From the NCBI GenBank assembly GCA_900088475.1, contig FLMG01003894.1, positions 10,270-74,269 on the forward strand: DNA of 64,000 bases, read 5' to 3'. The stretch comes from Hyphochytrium catenoides. Lineage: Eukaryota > Protista > Hyphochytriomycota. Positions 19,887 to 32,243 of this stretch are shown one piece after another. The translations under genes were made by a program, and so were the position numbers. The notes under the pieces were generated by a model that made no database searches, had not been told where the DNA came from, and saw only the letters and a list, made by a program, of their open reading frames with translations. The first letter of the stretch is position 1, and each line of letters opens with the position of its first letter.

Positions 19887-20572
19887 GTCTCTCTGTGTCT
19901 CTCTTTCATCCTCTCTCTGTCTCTTTCGCCATATCTGTCTCTCTCTCTCTCTGTTGAGCTCGTTCACCACTTGCGGAGTATTAGCTCACCGATAAATACC
20001 TCTAGGAAAAGCTGGAGCGGCTCGATGACGCCTCAACGGAGCTGATGATGGCTGAAGGCGAGCCCGTCCAGTAGGTCCCTGGCCTCGGAACGAACCCCTT
20101 TCTCCATTTCCCTCACACTTCTACTCGCTAGGCTGTACATCGGCGACTGCTTTGTGCAGACAGAAGAAGAGTACGCCACAGATTACTTAGAGAAAGAGCA
20201 GGAGGTGAGTTCATTGAAGAAGATATGGTTGATCTCTTTATTCCTCGCCGCTACCTTATTCTCATGGACTCTCTCTTGAACCTTAGAAACTCCAGACAGA
20301 GCAGTCAGATTTATCCGCAGAGCTAGAGCGCGTACTGGCTCGACAGCAGGTAGGGGGAAGATAGAAACGCTTGAGGGTGCTCTGATCTACTCCCCATCCT
20401 TTTCTCTCTTCTCTCCCCTCTCTCTTTGGCAGATCATATCTCAACTATCACTAGTCTCCACTTGGCTCGCGTGTCTCTCTCGTGTCTGTCATCGGTAACA
20501 ATCTCCATATAGGAGCTTAAGAAAACGTTGTATGGACGCTTCGGGAAGAGCATCAACCTCGAGGACGAGTGA
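19704..20572 (+). CDS. PFDN4: Prefoldin subunit 4, 5 exons
   Basis: EVEVRREDQDKINEFGRLN, LDDASTELMM, YIGDCFV, ELKKTLYGRFGKSINLEDE*. All introns GT-AG. Confidence 0.94.
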
Positions 20573-23347: not shown

Positions 23348-25676
23348 ATGGCGCACCACCATGCAGATCTTGCTGCAGATCTCCAGGCATTCAAGCTCCA
23401 TCAGAAGGCTGTGGTCAGAGATTATTACGTTGAGCCAAGACTAGGTACGACTTGTAGTCTGTGTGGATGCCTCTAAGCCAGCTGACTATTTCTTCAAGAT
23501 TATCGTACTATCAGTGGCGTGAATGGGCCCCTGGTGATTGTAGAGAATGTCAAGGTAAGGATTGCCACTCCGAAAAATAAGGCCATATGAAGACAACGGC
23601 TGTGCTGATTCAGCTCCTTTCCAGCTCCCAAAATACAATGAGATCGTGAATCTTACGCTTGCAAATGGTGAGACTCGGCAAGGACAAGTGTTGGAGGTGC
23701 AAGGCTCCCGAGCCGTCGTGCAGGTAACATCGAGCTCATCCTCAATGCACAGCACCCAAAGGACCAGCCTGACTGAGCCTCTGCAAAGGTCTTTGAAGGC
23801 ACAGACGGGATTGATAATAGGCATACCCATTGTGAGTTTACCGGCGATGTCTTGCGGATGCCTATCTCCGAAGAGATGCTTGGCAGAGCCTTCAATGGTT
23901 CAGGGAAGGCTATCGACGGCGCACCACCGGTGTTAGCGGAGGAGTATCTTGATATTCAGGGTAAAACTTTTCCACTTCTTTAGCGTCGGTTCTCCTCTCG
24001 GCATCTGAGCAGCTTGCTTGCACAGGCCAACCTATCAACCCCTCGTGCCGTGATTATCCCAAGGCTATGATTCAGACGGGTATCTCCGGTATCGACGTGA
24101 TGAACTCCATTGCCAGGGGGCAAAAGATTCCTCTTTTCTCTGCAGCTGGTCTCCCGCACAATGAAGTACGTTTTTTCGTAAAGGGCACCCTTGATCTCCT
24201 CTTAAATGCACCGCTTGTATAGGCGCGAGTACCGACATCGAGGCTCATGTCTCTTTCTTCTCTAACCTATGATTCCCTTGTGTTCTAACCGATCGCCCCG
24301 TAGATTGCTGCACAAATTGTGCGTCAGGCGGGGTTGGTGAAGAAGAAGGACGTCATTGACGGTAGTGACGAGAACTTTGCCATTGTCTTCGGTGCTATGG
24401 GTGTTAATATGGAGACGGCACGTTTCTTCCGCAACGACTTCGAGGAGAGTGGCGCCATCCAGCGGACAGCCCTTTTCATGAACTTGGCGAATGATCCTAC
24501 CATTGAGCGCATTATCACACCCCGTCTAGCTCTCACGACTGCTGAGTACTTAGCCTACGAGAGGGACTTGCATGTGCTGGTTATCTTGACAGATATGAGT
24601 TCCTATGCCGATGCTCTGAGAGAAGTATCTGCTGCAAGAGAAGAAGTGCCAGGCCGAAGAGGCTATCCTGGTTATATGTACACAGATCTCTCCACAATTT
24701 ATGAGAGAGCGGGACGAGTGATGGGGCGCAACGGGTCAATCACGCAGCTGCCCATCCTCACCATGCCAAACGACGATATCACACATCCAATCCCAGATTT
24801 GACTGGGTACATCACGGAGGGACAGATCTATGTAGACAGACAGCTGCACAACCGTCAGATCTTCCCACCAATCAATGTGTTGCCGTCTCTGTCTCGTCTG
24901 ATGAAGTCCGCCATTGGTGAGGGGATGACCCGAGATGATCATGGCGCTGTCTCCAACCAACTGGTAAGGCTTTCAGTAGGTAGCGTCGAACTGGACGGTA
25001 GACGTCCTTTGGAGCCAGTATGATAGCTGACGCTCTTCCTTTATTTTTCTTTATTCTCTCCATCTCTCTATCGGCTAACGTATCGCTGATGCCATAGTAT
25101 GCGAGTTATGCTACCGGAAAGGACGTCTTGGCTATGAAGGCGGTCGTGGGAGAGGAGGCTCTTTCTCTGGAAGACCACCTGTATCTGAAGTTCACAGAGA
25201 AGTTCGAGAGCAAGTTCATTGCTCAAGGTACCCTCCCATCTCTGTTTTAAAGACTGGTAGTGTAGGCTGCCAATCTATGAGCGTGTGCCGGCGACGATAA
25301 GCGAGGGAGGTGTGTCTTGATGGAAGGAGAAAGTGAGCAAATAGAGCTTTGGTCACGCCACGAGGGGAAGGGCGGATGGCAGTTCCCCACTTTGTTCCTT
25401 CTCGACGACGCACGGCGCCCGCACTCTTTTTTTGGCAAGCGGTCAGTCCAAGGCTCACTGTATATTTCTTATCTCTGTCGCCCCGTTCTTCTCTCTCTTC
25501 TCTGTGTCCTAGGTCCTTATGAGTCTAGGGATATTTTCGAATCCCTGGACCTTGCGTGGTCTCTCTTCCGTGCCTTCCCTAGAGAACTCCTCAAGAAGAT
25601 TCCAAAGGAGCAGCTGGACAAGTACTATGCCAGGAGGTCCAAGGGTGAAGAAGAGGTGGATGCCGAGAAGGAGTAA
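23348..25676 (+). CDS. VMA2: V-type H+-ATPase subunit B, 8 exons
   Basis: [93 protein letters not shown]. All introns GT-AG. Confidence 0.97.
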
Positions 25677-25937: not shown

Positions 25938-28900
25938 CTACCAGTCCTCGTCAAGCACCTCCAGCCTATCGCAAAACTTCTTCACTTCGTCCTGAAGCCG
26001 CGAGACGAGCTCTTGTGACAGTGCTGAGGATTCTGATCGAATGGTAGATGGCATTCGGGCCAAAGAGAGAGAGCGTGGCAAAAGGGGAGAAGGGGGAAAA
26101 GACATGTCGATGAGGCAGGGGAGATTGCAATAGAAGCTATCGTTAGATGACCGTGGCACCAGGCAGGCGGGAGGTTATCTGAATACAAGGAAAGAGACAA
26201 TCTAGACTCCAACCTTCTGGATGGCTGTTCACTCAATGATGGGAAGACATAAGCAATATCAGGCTGTGTATCAGTAGCAGACAGGGACGTAAACCTTGCT
26301 TTCCATTCAGCACCATCAAGATTATCCATCGAGGGACAAGGCTCTTGAGAGACGAGTCTGTCTTTACGTCTTACCTTCAATCTCTCTCAGAGTATTGGGG
26401 GCGTGCACCTGAAGATGCTCTACCAGCGCCGTGTACGTATCGGCCAGGCCCTTTGGATCTTTGGGAAAGAACTTGAGGAAATCCGAGGTCACCAGGACTA
26501 GAGCAAGTAGAGAGTCCAGACGTTTGAACGACGAAGAAACGTCCTGCACAGGTAAAAGTCGTGAGCCATAAGCGAGAAGCGCCATGTGGAGAGTGCGAGG
26601 GAGGACGGAAGGCAGACGCTTCCTCTATTGAAAGGTTCAAAAGAGCAATGAACAGGATCGGACATTGGTAGGAGAGTACCACATAGAGGAGAGAAGACAG
26701 CGGTGTGCAAATGCTATTCCGGAAGCGTAAGGAGTCCTGGACATGACCAGAGGTTGCCTTATAGAGGAAGCTTTGAGCTTGGAGAAGCTGAGCGAGGGGA
26801 AAAGAAGTCTCCGGCACCTCTGAGTACAGCATTTGGATCTTGGATCTATCACTTAGCGCCTCAATCACGTCAAGCTCAGGCCGCAGACCAAAATCTTTAG
26901 CGACCTCTGCGCTCGTGGCAAGCTGATTGTACTGAGAGAGGAGCCCTCGCATGACCTAGAAAGAGCACAGTTTGAGATACACAAGGAGGGAGAATGAGAT
27001 AGAGGCAAAAGATGAGAACGGGAGGCTCGTAAAGGCTGACGAAAGGACAGAGAGCCCAATTATTCTTGCTGACGGAGTGCCAGACACAGGAGAGCGGCGG
27101 AGACCAACAGGGAATCGCCAACGAGACAAACACCGACAGCCTGTTACATCGTCTAGGACAGAGTGAGACAAAAGGAACGCGATGGCCTACCTGCACTAAG
27201 GAGGCTAAAGCTGGGTCTTGATAGGGCGCGGGACGCAGAGAAGCACCGGGTGCTAGACAGTTAATGGCCGGGAACGTCTATCCGGTTGTCGATGTGAGAG
27301 AATCTCAGGGGAAGAGAAAAGGACTACGGAACTGGTTGACTTCAATATGAAAAAGAGATATAGATGCGGTGCAGACGCTTGAAGAGTACTAGAAGAGAGG
27401 ATGGAAACTGAGAGTAGCTTCATTGGCGCTCACCTTCTCTCTGACAAGGTTAGCGTCCAGCAGGACATGGCTGTCATGCATTGAGGCGATTATCTCGGGG
27501 GTCCCTACGGCCAACGCACAGCAGATTAGAGGCACTCTTCATCCCATAACTTCCAAGGAGAAGCGCCGGACTGAGACGCCGCGTCCCAAACTGGATGGCT
27601 GAGAAAGGTCGCAATGTAAACAAGCACAGGCTCTCTCGCTCATAGATCAAATAAGAGAGGAAAGGAGAGAGATGTCGAAGCACGGAGGGGGGGGGGGGCA
27701 CGCGGTCGTATACCAAGAAGCCATATGGGACGTAGAGAGACAGTGTATAGATAGCAAGGACGGGCCAATGCGCCGATTAAGCTTGACACGGTCAGTACAT
27801 TTCGTAGGTCTTACCGCCTGTAGTGCTTCCTTCCCCGCGTTGCAGATTGCAAAGAGAGAGGACAGTAATAGAACCGCCGCCACTGGCAGGTGACAACGCT
27901 CCTGCACGCTCTAGTAGTGGACCATGAACAGACACTCCTCTACGGTTGTACAGGGGCAGAAGCATCGCGCGTGCTAGCTCCTCATACGCCTGACAAACAG
28001 GCGGATGGAATGAGGAGTCCGAACAGTAGACGAGGACAATCGCAGCATTTGATCGAATGCCAGAGCGTTATTTGGACTCCTTCTCACTAAGACTTACCGC
28101 TGCATGCATGCCGAGGTCATCGAACACCACAAAAGCGTCCTCTCCCCGATCTCGGAAGTGCTCTGCTAGAGAACAGCCCGCCAAGGGGGCGAGGTAGCGA
28201 AGAGAGGCAGGGTCATCGCTGCAGGCGGCAATCACTGAGCAGTGAGCCAGCGCTCCCCGAGCCTTCAGGGCTGCGACAATCTTCTGTAGGCCGAGCCTGA
28301 AAGAGGAAAAAAATGAAAGGAGAAGTGAGCAGACCTCCATTATCGGTCGTGATACGGAGCTTAAGAAACACGACTCAATAATAGTAGAGCAAAAAGGCGG
28401 CTGACAGGAGAGAGACAGAGACCAGCATGAGAACCTGCTTTGGCCAACGTAGACGTAGACGCAGTGCATGCGAGAAGCATTAGTCTCTCTCTGCTCACAA
28501 AGGTTTGAGATGATGTCAACCGCCAGAGATGATTTTCCTGTGCCCCTGCAACAACATGAAAGATTAGAGAAAGAAAGGCTAAACAGAGGATGAATGGGGG
28601 ATTGGGGAGAGGCAAGACCAGACACAAATGAGGAAGCGATAAAGCGGCCATTCGAAGGCAATATAAGAGATATAAAGAGGTTTCTAAGGGTTTCCACTTA
28701 CTGCTCACCGAGAACCGCTACTCTGCTGCCATAAGCGAGCGGATGGAAGACATCGATGATCTTAACTCCAGTGACTAGTCGCCGGGTCAGTCTGTCCCGA
28801 GCCAGCAGTCGAGGAACAGGCCCAAAGACAGAGGAATCCTAATTTATGTGGAGGATGAAGGTTGAGGGATAAGGAACTAAGAGAATCTCTTTACTTTGTC

Positions 28901-29708
28901 ACGCTCCTTCTACTTTTTAGGTGACGACTTGTCTCCAAGCGGTCGTTGTATATCTCCCGTGGCCCCTTAGAGATCCTATCCTCTCACCTCTGGGCTGTAG
29001 GCCTCGACCTCTCCATCCAACGGTCTTCCCAAGGGGTCAATGACGCGTCCCTCCAATATGGAGCCCACTGGCACGGTGAGAGCCTTTCCAGTCGCCTGAA
29101 TAAGTGTTCCTCTCTATCGAGTTAGGAAGACCGCAGGTGAGAGTAACAAGAATCACCGAGGTTTTGGGTCGACGCCTTGGAATGGAGGGTAGAGAGGGGA
29201 AAGCGAGGATGGCTATGGCTGACACAAAAGGCTGTAGGACATTGAGAAGAGACACATCTTTGCCAGAGAAGAACGATGAAGAGAGTTGGATTTTATCGCT
29301 TTGAAGAAAGGGATGGGAACAGGCATTACGTTGCCCAGAAAGAGACTGGACGAAATGGTAAACAGAGAAGAGAGCTGAGGTGTAGACCTTCAGTCCCCGT
29401 TCTTTGCCTAGCACAGCTATTGATACTGTTTTCCTGTCCAGACGGAGGATAAATCCGCGTACTGGGGGTGATGTATGAATGATCACTTCCTCTCCCAACT
29501 TCGCTGTCTTCAGTCCTAGAGAGTGGCAGGAACCAACAGCATTAGAGCCAGGGCCAGGAGAGGAGCTATGGATTTGATAGGAGAATAAGGGAGCTATCGT
29601 GAAGTAAGTGGCGTGCACGCGTGGGCGAGAGAGAGAGAGAAGGAAATAGAGGGGAAAGAAGGAGGGAAGAGAGAGAAAGAGAGAAAGAGAAAGAGAGAGA
29701 GAGAGAGG

Positions 29709-29746
<38 letters not shown>

Positions 29747-30314
29747 AGGGAGAGGAAGGGAGCAGTCTTCCACGGAGAGGGCAGGTGGGAAGTCGTGGTC
29801 TTTAGGATCACATTACGAACTTGTGCGATAAGGGCCTCAGACACTTGTGAAGAACTTACCATTGGCTATCACAATGCCTCTAAGAACCTCCAGCAGCTCC
29901 CCTTCATCCTCTGAGCGCGGCGTTGCCTGAGTCGTCTTGCTGAGAATTTGCTTAAAGAGTACCTGGGAATCTTCAGAGGGAGAGACTGGCCGGTTGCCTT
30001 CCCTCTGGGCAGCTGGCGCAGTGTTATGGAATGCTCGTATTCGCGCGGGTGAGCACTCGGCAGCGGTGACCACCGAGCTGAGGCTCTGAGGTGTAGCACA
30101 CACAAGGGCCCATTGACTGCAAAGACAAAGGAGGTCGCTCTAAGATCATGGCGAGAATGTTGGAGACTAACCGGAGGGAAGTAAGAGAGAAAGACTTCAT
30201 ATAATGGCCTGTAGGAAGACCAGGACGTGAGCGGTCATACGCCTACCTGCGACGGGCAACGCAATGCGTCGTTGCTGCACTAAGCCGACCTCGGATCAAT
30301 CTCGCTCTTCTCAT
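25938..30314 (-). CDS. Highly divergent F1-ATP synthase alpha-subunit-like protein with Arg-rich mitochondrial-type presequence, 12 or more exons
   Basis: Colinear alpha motifs: [141 protein letters not shown], LSQY. Some internal exon borders uncertain. Confidence 0.82.
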
Positions 30315-31102: not shown

Positions 31103-32243
31103 ATGAAGAAAAGAATCGCCTTTAGGAAGCTTGGCAGGGACACTGCTCATCGCTGGGCTATGCTCAGGTTGGCGAAACCTCCTCGTGCTTTGTCTGCGGC
31201 CCTCTGCTCATCCCTTGCCTTTCACATTCACCACCTGGTCTATTGCGTTCTCCTCATTCTTCCTCTCTTGTTATGTACTTCCTTGGCTGAGCTGGAGCAC
31301 GTTCCTCAGCCACAACTGGGAGTTCGGCCTATTTACCCGGCAGACAGTCTCATAACGTTGTCCTAACCTCCACCCTCCTGGTCCCCCGTCTGGCGCGTGA
31401 TCGTAGGACGATGGTAACCCAGCTGATCCAACACGAGAGGATCCGCACCACCACTCCCAAGGCCAAGGAGCTAAGACGGGTGGCAGACCAAATGGTCACG
31501 CTGGCCAAGCAAGGTGAGGCCAGTGGCACATTACCAGCGTGGGCGCTTCCTAGTCTTCGTCTGCTTTGGTTCCTGTCGTTTCTTCTCTTCTCTTGTGTCC
31601 GGTCGTTACCGAAGAGGATCACCTTGTTCCTAGCTGTGATCCCCATCACTTTTGGTGGTACCTTCCGGCTCTTTACTTCAGCTAACATTTCTTGTTCCCG
31701 CCCTGCTGCCGCCCTTCCCCCATAAAGGCGGCCGTCACCACTTTCTAATGGCCAGAGCTGTAGTGCGCGATGCGCCCACCACCAGGAAGCTCTTCGACGT
31801 ATTTGGCCCTCGCTACAAGTAGGAGGCGCACTCGGTGTATCGTCTCGCTTGCGATCAACTTGCTTCTGCCTTCTGCACAATCCCATTCGACTCCTACTTG
31901 GCAGGGGATCTGCCTTCTTTGATACATAGCTGACTTTTGATATGCAGGGAGCGTGAGGGTGGATACACGCGTGTAATAAAGTTGCACAGGCGACGAGGTG
32001 ACAATGCAGACATGAGTATTATAGAGTTTATTGACAGGTCAGAGGAGATCCTGCTGCTAGATATTGCCTTTTCACAGCCTGCGTACTTCTCTTTTCTCCT
32101 TGTGGAAAGCTTTCTGCTCTTTGCGCATCCTTGGTCTGACCCTTAGCGCCTCTCAATGGCTTGTTACATTTAGAACTGGAGAGATCAGGACCCCTCGGCC
32201 TCCGCAGCAGCGAGATCTCGGTTTGAAGGACCTCGTAGTTTAA
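31103..32243 (+). CDS. rpl17: Bacterial-type ribosomal protein L17 (probably mitochondrial), 5 exons
   Basis: [86 protein letters not shown]. Confidence 0.93.

Follow-up and report, generated by a model that had tools for sequence, protein, structure and literature searches.

Within a window of 64,000 nucleotides (nt) from Hyphochytrium catenoides (contig FLMG01003894.1, positions 10,270 to 74,269, forward strand), which is nuclear eukaryotic DNA of about 51% G+C with short introns, the minus strand carries from 30314 to 25938 a gene whose product has the architecture of the alpha subunit of F1 ATP synthase and departs from it at many of the positions that working alpha subunits hold nearly invariant. 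The subject of what follows is this alpha-like gene and its protein. The protein probably belongs to a family of remodelled nuclear alpha paralogues, with other members in eustigmatophytes and MAST-4 stramenopiles, and may be a mitochondrial accessory of the ATP synthase head instead of a subunit of the motor.

The alpha-like gene

The gene was built from the DNA and its three-frame translation. Its 13 exons (Table 1) are separated by 12 introns of 108–344 nt, all 12 with GT and AG at their ends and each containing stop codons, and the exons join to an open coding sequence of 1836 nt that in the best model specifies about 611 amino acids. At the base composition of the locus the chance of 611 codons being free of stops is about 3e-10, and G+C is 0.555 in the exons as against 0.491 in the introns. 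This is a real, intact nuclear gene, the model of which is known here from genomic DNA alone. The initial annotation had the exons open and the splice sites intact, and so they are, with one acceptor moved: that of exon 4 is now at 29113 (CTAACTCGATAG/AG), 18 nt upstream of the earlier site. The shift adds RGTLIQ to the protein and makes the spacing before VPVG canonical, it raises both of the profile scores described below by 10–15 bits, and it agrees with the start, at 29110, of the tblastn matches of two alphas, P0195 and P0043. Two other boundaries are ambiguous from DNA alone. The acceptor of exon 9 may be 27504 or 27534, the latter adding 10 residues at the place where other members of the family insert 11–14, and the donor of exon 11 may be 26743 or 26680. 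The longer exon 11 (donor 26680) would bring in 21 residues absent from all relatives with no gain in score, and it was set aside.

Homology to F1 alpha, domains and leader

For remote searches the query was either a relative or the stop-free open reading frame (ORF) at 28071–28697, which takes in exon 6, the intron behind it and exon 7; the full spliced protein was compared locally. Exon 7 alone finds Pfam PF00006 (E 2e-14), most single exons having no Pfam match, and the ORF with exons 6 and 7 finds solved F1 alpha chains (E 8e-18), no other type of protein ranking higher. The Toxoplasma alpha chain in PDB is not nearer to that ORF than bacterial alphas are. Exon 8 alone matches alpha chains weakly and exon 11 alone has no PDB match. 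The spliced protein aligns with alphas across residues 67–597 at 28–37% identity, and all three F1-alpha domains are there in order: the N-terminal beta-barrel, the nucleotide-binding domain and the C-terminal helical bundle. Some 65 residues precede a conserved N-terminal helix, and the N-terminus itself (MRRARLIRGR...), with seven Arg or Lys and no Asp or Glu in residues 1–40, looks typical of a mitochondrial presequence. The earlier view of three alpha domains behind a presequence is upheld by the span of the alignment and by this Arg-rich, acid-free start.

The helix, SPSEDSQVLFKQILS, lines up with its counterpart at the N-terminus of canonical alpha and recurs in MAST-4 and eustigmatophyte members of the family and in P0123. 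Basic, acid-poor leaders stand before it in the Hyphochytrium protein, in P0060, P0103 and P0123, and in the longer eustigmatophyte ORFs P0286 and P0452, and none of these leaders is signal-peptide-like. An AlphaFold2 model of P0060, probably a MAST member (predicted local distance difference score 82, predicted template modelling score 0.83), has residues 1–46 disordered, after which come a short helix and all three alpha domains; every one of its 50 best PDB matches is an F1 alpha chain (TM scores 0.80–0.89 by target). On this model of a relative, the fold of the family is that of F1 alpha in full.

Departure from working alpha subunits

How far can an alpha subunit diverge and still serve as one? 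Among 35 alphas, 62 columns are at least 90% identical. The Hyphochytrium protein keeps 40 of the 62, its full-length relatives keep 38–41 and the partial ORF of contig L009 keeps 28, while divergent true alphas keep 52–60, that of Cryptosporidium being at 60. On a profile of the same 35 alphas the protein scores 317 bits and seven divergent true alphas 366–622, six of them at 538–622 (Cryptosporidium 622). The relatives reach 217–253 bits against NCBIfam atpA (TIGR00962), for which the cutoff is 484, and in Pfam only their central domain is above threshold, the N-terminal domain being undetected and the C-terminal one at most below threshold. The strong divergence from F1 alpha that had been claimed for the gene is evident on both measures (40 of 62 columns; 317 bits against 366–622 in divergent true alphas), and by such comparison of sequences the protein is well outside the range of working alphas and is probably not the alpha of the rotary enzyme.

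The columns lost are largely identical across the family, namely the Asp-Arg of the P-loop, the Arg of AYRQ, the loop from DDL to LLER and the Gln of DGQ, and most members have also lost the Arg of HSR-LLER. Kept are the Gly-Lys-Ser/Thr of the P-loop, Walker B, LLER, GGGS-x-T and the Pro-Ala of PAIN, and Gln or His occupies the position of the beta catalytic Glu. Judged by these residues, the family keeps the set with which alpha holds Mg-nucleotide (P-loop Lys and Ser/Thr, Walker B Asp, and Gln or His for the beta Glu) and has lost or reshaped alpha's share of the beta catalytic interface (the DDL-to-LLER loop, DGQ and SVSRVG).

In the Hyphochytrium protein each of the motif strings initially quoted was found again (GEQGTGKS, LPLYNRRGVSVHGPLLERAG, PEIIASMHDSH, ASLRP and the presequence). 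Its Walker A, GEQGTGKS for GDRQTGKT, spans the junction of exons 5 and 6 and fits GxxxxGK[ST] without the alpha-specific Asp-Arg, as in the whole family, and Walker B, VVFDDL, is present, as is GQ. With the loop LPLYNRRGVSVHGPLLERAG the stretch from DDL to LLER is 4 residues shorter than the canonical one and is without PPGRE; SMHDSH stands in place of SITDGQ, Ser and Asp being kept. The arginine-finger segment is a subtler matter. SVSRVG is indeed replaced by ASLRP, as had been noted, but when ASLRPAPYQ is set against canonical SVSRVGSAAQ an Arg lies just one position out of register, because of which loss of the finger is likely and not certain, and it may not be wholly gone. Before PAIN there is Phe where alphas have Arg. 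In bovine F1 that Arg is said, from the 1994 work of Abrahams and colleagues, to line the alpha adenine pocket and to align with beta Tyr-345, and F/W-P-A-V would then make a beta-like adenine pocket. The Phe or Trp before P-A may thus be a lead to such a pocket in the family.

A loosely knit family of relatives

An exhaustive HMMER search with the exon 6–7 ORF, run against 1.84 billion representative proteins, found neither this protein nor a close orthologue, nothing exceeding 76 bits; identity was 30–56% among the matches listed. When 150 of the matches were re-scored with the full protein the best were aberrant alphas, P0043/P0151, P0060, P0103 and P0123, and further searches added P0168/P0169, P0284–P0287, P0105 (the L009 ORF) and P0465. 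Word-index searches, for which the 8000 candidates with most shared words were scored, were dominated by canonical alphas and gained few members, and a feature search of the ESM Atlas with alpha families skipped gave FliI and V-type clusters only. Two metagenome proteins from ENA, P0166 and P0167, rank high on the profile and were rejected as canonical alphas with a duplicated nucleotide-binding domain or as chimeras, the internal duplication probably being due to errors of assembly or gene calling. The synonymous-only differences among contigs encoding P0162 were not used, being circular since the contigs had been looked up by identical protein.

From what organisms do the relatives come? The 90% cluster of P0287 holds Nannochloropsis gaditana EWM27503.1 / W7TVI1 (named 'atp synthase alpha subunit') and Microchloropsis salina TFJ85506.1, and the P0043 group is therefore eustigmatophyte. 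Genes adjoining P0103/P0162 cluster with EukProt proteins labelled Stramenopile-MAST_4, and the cluster of P0060 has one EukProt and one Tara Oceans member. The relatives' genes lie on eukaryotic contigs among ordinary eukaryotic neighbours, with no conserved gene context across those contigs. The published models of the N. gaditana and M. salina proteins (P0450/P0449) start at the conserved helix, and the longer ORFs from other assemblies, P0286 and P0452, add a presequence-like leader. For N. gaditana W7TVI1 the name 'atp synthase alpha subunit' is a misnomer, the protein being a member of the divergent family and not a canonical alpha; no paper was found that mentions W7TVI1, EWM27503 or TFJ85506. 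These two proteins are the closest identifiable relatives of the Hyphochytrium one (33–37% identity). They share with it DVFHPL, HGPLLER, FPA and an extra segment at the same site of the C-terminal domain, and they are its sister in two of three trees; they differ from it in being intronless, in low-complexity inserts, in an 11–12 residue insertion before SIVD and in having no basic residue near the finger position. Among eustigmatophyte orthologues the ratio of nonsynonymous to synonymous substitution (dN/dS) is 0.09–0.15 (0.15 at dS 0.27; 0.10 at dS 0.73), which is strong purifying selection. Because the Hyphochytrium protein has no close orthologue, this estimate is one for its relatives.

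The family signature comprises H-P-L for the (V/I)-P-I of alphas before the P-loop strand; an aromatic residue for the Arg before P-A-I-N, Phe in the Hyphochytrium protein and eustigmatophytes and Trp in others; a DDL-to-LLER stretch shortened by 4–7 residues and without PPGRE; a P-loop without the alpha-specific Asp-Arg; neither DGQ nor SVSRVG; a Gly in the C-terminal FG motif, with extra residues after FG(I/L); and a conserved acidic N-terminal helix behind a basic leader. The Hyphochytrium protein matches with HPL, FPAIN and DFGL and is about 4 residues longer after FG. Between GGSL..L and S-x-x-D it has 2 extra residues (12 with acceptor 27534) and the relatives 0–14. The P-loop fits GxxxxGK[ST] in all members except the L009 ORF (L009:89-1246, a Logan contig of SRR29205950), a GC-rich member in whose GPKNSGKR an Arg stands where Ser/Thr is expected, so that not every lineage retains the nucleotide site.

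In a maximum-likelihood tree (LG+C20 with posterior mean site frequencies) the Hyphochytrium protein and nine relatives form one clade with 100/100 support, separate from 35 alphas that are canonical or no more than divergent, a set that includes the Cryptosporidium alpha and other long-branch sequences. In this alpha phylogeny, stramenopile homologues included, the protein is not an ordinary Atp1. With two further members added, support for the clade is 100, and the eustigmatophyte group comes out as the protein's sister with support of 87. Its terminal branch is about 1.9 substitutions per site, and when placed without the relatives it sits on a branch of 4.2 substitutions per site beside another odd sequence, a placement that is uninformative. 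An approximately unbiased (AU) test rejects the protein alone with the mitochondrial alpha clade (p 0.017) and does not reject the whole family there (p 0.29), by which descent from a mitochondrial alpha is allowed.

Tests of membership other than the tree point in much the same direction. On a family profile built without it the protein scores 361 bits, against 317 on the canonical profile, and seven divergent true alphas score 178–323 on the family profile. It shares three of eight family-specific conserved residues, with Phe for Trp at a fourth, where nine of nine canonical controls share none, and it keeps 63 of 81 family-conserved columns. It departs from several residues conserved in the family (SMHD for S(I/V)VD, for instance), and in leave-one-group-out comparisons some members score no better on the remaining family than on canonical alphas. 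The shared indels are independent of the tree, since the tree ignores gaps. All told, the protein probably does belong to the eustigmatophyte/MAST-4 family, and by these comparisons the family is a conserved though loosely knit clade of nuclear alpha-like paralogues of which the Hyphochytrium protein is not a one-off.

Comparison with xATPA and other known systems

That divergent extra alpha copies might already be noted in some algae had been surmised at the start, and they are: xATPA (Penot-Raquin et al. 2026, 10.64898/2026.07.08.737214), a divergent alpha homologue of about 70 kDa, is the ATP1B of Chlamydomonas and the B7FRE6 of Phaeodactylum. It has a bump domain roughly 60 amino acids long, an inconsistent P-loop and a conserved catalytic arginine; in Phaeodactylum it is located in the plastid; it binds beta and gamma; when expressed in yeast that lacks alpha it fails to behave as canonical alpha does, and it is reported to have no part in ATP synthase function and to be absent from eustigmatophytes, chrysophytes and oomycetes (10.64898/2026.07.08.737214). 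The comparison with it was made by eye on part of the sequences in the preprint's supplement. Those sequences have TP(I/L)GxGQ, FYSSLxQR for LLER, K/R-PAI and SLTR(V/I)GIG, and DVFHPL is in none of those examined. Like the Hyphochytrium protein, xATPA is a nuclear-encoded, organelle-targeted F-type alpha homologue of about 65–70 kDa with the alpha fold, outside the canonical clade and not a working alpha. In the part of the supplement covered, its bump is at the site, between GGSLT..L and S-x-x-D, of the 11–14 residue insertion of most relatives of the Hyphochytrium protein, so a deep link between xATPA and the family is possible. Otherwise the two are contrary: xATPA, as far as the sequences covered go, has the bump of about 60 amino acids, keeps the arginine motif, has K/R-PAI and FYSSLxQR and has often lost the P-loop, whereas the present family has HPL, F/W-PA, LLER, no arginine motif, a P-loop kept in all but the L009 ORF and mitochondrial-type presequences. 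The Hyphochytrium protein itself has neither the bump domain some 60 amino acids long nor SLTR(V/I)GIG. The clade to which it belongs differs, on these signatures, from xATPA and is apparently undescribed.

With canonical F1 alpha (TIGR00962; PF02874+PF00006+PF00306) the protein has in common the order of domains, GxxxxGK[ST], Walker B, Gln for the beta Glu, LLER and GGGS-x-T; it lacks, in the canonical form, GDRQTGKT, the full-length DDL-to-LLER loop, DGQ, SVSRVG and the Arg before PAIN. The F1-like ATPases of mycoplasmas (the MMOB1660 alpha of the gliding motor and the MSC_0619 type; PMC3369863) resemble it in being alpha-derived and recruited beyond ordinary ATP synthase, and differ in being bacterial and in operons with beta-, gamma- and epsilon-like partners (PMC3369863). 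Members of the family match the NCBIfam gliding and MSC_0619 models weakly, far below their match to atpA. As to where alpha is encoded, Sevcikova et al. 2016 (PMC4824035) report atp1 in the mitochondrial DNA of eustigmatophytes, oomycetes, hyphochytrids and bicosoecids and a nuclear atp1 only in stramenopiles without a mitochondrial copy, an ancestor with both being left open. The eustigmatophyte nuclear alpha-like proteins found here are unmentioned in that paper.

Exon coordinates and neighbouring genes

The exons are given in Table 1. Next to the alpha-like gene is another gene of the alpha/beta ATPase superfamily, that for V-type ATPase subunit B (23500-25676, plus strand); the two are convergent, with just 261 bp between its end at 25676 and the alpha-like stop codon, and tblastn with canonical F1 alpha also matches it (24334-24933). 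On the other side, ORFs resembling mitochondrial ribosomal protein L17 lie at 31103-31900 on the plus strand, about 0.8–1.1 kb upstream of the alpha-like start. As these ORFs and the alpha-like gene are divergently oriented, a promoter region common to two mitochondrial proteins is possible. Intron 2 has a long CT-rich low-complexity tract (29620-29800, minus strand) that reads SLSLSL in several frames, and similar tracts recur in the window, e.g., near 19900.

Table 1. Exons of the alpha-like gene and the features that they encode (positions in the window)
Exon	Positions	Strand	Features
1	30247..30314	-	Start ATG 30314-30312; start of Arg-rich presequence; donor GTAGGC
2	29860..30116	-	Remaining presequence-like part (to ~30005); N-terminal helix SPSEDSQVLFKQILS (~29983-29939); start of beta-barrel
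3	29388..29515	-	N-terminal beta-barrel (crown) domain
4	28988..29113	-	Revised acceptor 29113 (profile scores and tblastn ends)
5	28702..28838	-	Linker to nucleotide-binding domain; HPL 28745-28737; first half of Walker A, G-E-Q, 28709-28702
6	28435..28545	-	Second half of Walker A, GTGKS, 28545-28530; strand VYVYVGQS with Gln at position of beta catalytic Glu
7	28098..28296	-	Best-conserved part of nucleotide-binding domain; Walker B VVFDDL 28130-28113; Pfam PF00006
8	27815..27989	-	Shortened loop LPLYNRRGVSVHGPLLERAG 27959-27900; GGGSITVL
9	27434..27504	-	PEIIASMHDSH 27499-27467; alternative acceptor 27534
10	27191..27277	-	TFPAIN 27274-27260, Phe at position of alpha Arg-362; ASLRP 27244-27230 replaces SVSRVG
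11	26743..26955	-	Start of C-terminal helical domain; DFGLRPE insertion; alternative donor 26680
12	26375..26543	-
13	25938..26032	-	C-terminal helix; stop TAG 25940-25938

Discussion

What might such a protein do? The reading that we prefer, and to which on the sequence evidence we give about even weight, is that it is a mitochondrial, non-catalytic, nucleotide-binding alpha-like accessory protein and not a subunit of the motor. It would be imported into mitochondria and there bind ATP or ADP without hydrolysis; its alpha-like surfaces, together with the conserved N-terminal helix, would let it dock on F1 partners, either free beta or a partial F1; and its part there would be to help assembly, to hold or to regulate, in parallel to the binding of beta by plastid xATPA in diatoms. 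We infer the mitochondrial location, the nucleotide binding, the want of catalysis and the identity of the partner from the features described above, and the working atp1 of this organism is presumably in its mitochondrial DNA, as reported for oomycetes and hyphochytrids (PMC4824035).

Could the protein instead be a structural variant of alpha in the mature head, taking the place of at least one mitochondrially encoded alpha so that the head is heteromeric? No ATP synthase structure is known to have a second type of alpha, which weighs against a proposal that is in any case improbable. The full alpha fold and crown domain, kept to judge from the model of P0060, would suit it, as would the family's conserved N-terminal helix, the canonical counterpart of which binds OSCP or the peripheral stalk, the Ser and Asp kept in S-x-x-D with an Arg near the finger position in the Hyphochytrium protein, and the unusual divergence of eustigmatophyte mitochondrial Atp1 itself (PMC4824035). 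However, the arginine motif and the DDL-to-LLER loop are not conserved across the family, the 317 bits of the protein on the canonical profile are below what divergent true alphas reach (366–622), and the plastid analogue xATPA is reported to have no part in ATP synthase function (10.64898/2026.07.08.737214). Ranking behind this, and so more improbable again, is work outside ATP synthase altogether, as a ring or a partner in another nucleotide-dependent mitochondrial machine. Retention of the nucleotide site with what may be a beta-like adenine pocket, loss of the motifs of the F1 catalytic interface, and the example of mycoplasma F1-like ATPases that have other jobs, whose NCBIfam gliding and MSC_0619 models match the family weakly, are what such a role has in its favour; but no conserved neighbours were found around the relatives, and the catalytic Glu is absent from all members, so a ring of such subunits alone could not hydrolyse ATP by the known mechanism. 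It is doubtful, too, that the protein is an xATPA orthologue which has lost most of its bump domain, even though both are nuclear-encoded, organelle-targeted alpha-likes of 65–70 kDa outside the canonical clade and the 11–14 residue insertion of most relatives is exactly at the site of the bump. The signatures of the two are opposite, DVFHPL is in none of the sequences examined from the supplement, and the preprint's authors, having searched Nannochloropsis and oomycete genomes, found no xATPA (10.64898/2026.07.08.737214).

A more sceptical reading, to which we assign even less weight, is that the gene is a decaying or functionless copy, produced either by duplication within the lineage or by transfer of atp1 to the nucleus and now being lost, grouped with the others by long-branch attraction and parallel decay. 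In its favour are a very long terminal branch (about 1.9 substitutions per site), the want of any close relative, a gene known from DNA alone, the arbitrary placement of the protein when alone in the tree, and changes in it at residues conserved in the family, such as SMHD for S(I/V)VD. Decay is hard to reconcile with a frame of 1836 nt open over 13 exons with every splice site intact (chance about 3e-10), with the retention of the P-loop, Walker B, LLER and 63 of 81 family-conserved columns, or with the sharing of rare family-specific residues with relatives that are under strong purifying selection. And is it simply the organism's sole Atp1, an orthologue that has evolved fast? That is very improbable indeed. 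Even in Cryptosporidium, whose F1 is a relict, alpha has 60 of the 62 near-invariant columns and a score of 622 bits, where the Hyphochytrium protein has 40 and 317; the AU test rejects its placement with mitochondrial alphas (p 0.017); and oomycetes and hyphochytrids have a normally evolving mitochondrial atp1 (PMC4824035).

Several points weigh against the preferred reading of an accessory protein. The alpha-like gene is only presumably an extra copy in its genome. The Ser and Asp of S-I-T-D, with the Arg near finger register, may contribute to a catalytic site. The gene model is drawn from DNA alone, targeting was judged from composition, and 1.84 billion representative proteins held no close orthologue. 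As to the family, the very long branch and the odd solo placement mean that long-branch attraction could inflate support for the clade, and the weak cohesion when groups are left out in turn means that the shared losses could be parallel.

With the accessory reading retained, a more tentative extension of it, which we consider possible and do not lean on, concerns the origin of the family. The Hyphochytrium protein and its relatives would be an old stramenopile family of mitochondrial nucleotide-binding pseudo-alphas, a nuclear atp1 copy retained where the working alpha is encoded in mitochondrial DNA (eustigmatophytes, and the oomycete and hyphochytrid relatives) and put to new use in holding or regulating nuclear-encoded beta until alpha made in the organelle is available. 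Such retention corresponds to an ancestor that carried both copies, a scenario left open by Sevcikova et al. 2016 (PMC4824035).

For atp1, the family bears on the movement of that gene between mitochondrial and nuclear genomes in stramenopiles. The plastid counterpart, xATPA, was described no earlier than the preprint of 2026, and what it does is not yet clear. If there is indeed another such family, remodelled in a different way and apparently mitochondrial, alpha-like accessories arose more than once or diversified widely, and for the function of such proteins Nannochloropsis would be a tractable system. F1 alpha is among the most conserved proteins known, and the remodelled copy is itself conserved and selected; there would therefore be biology around the ATP synthase head that is unseen in model organisms.

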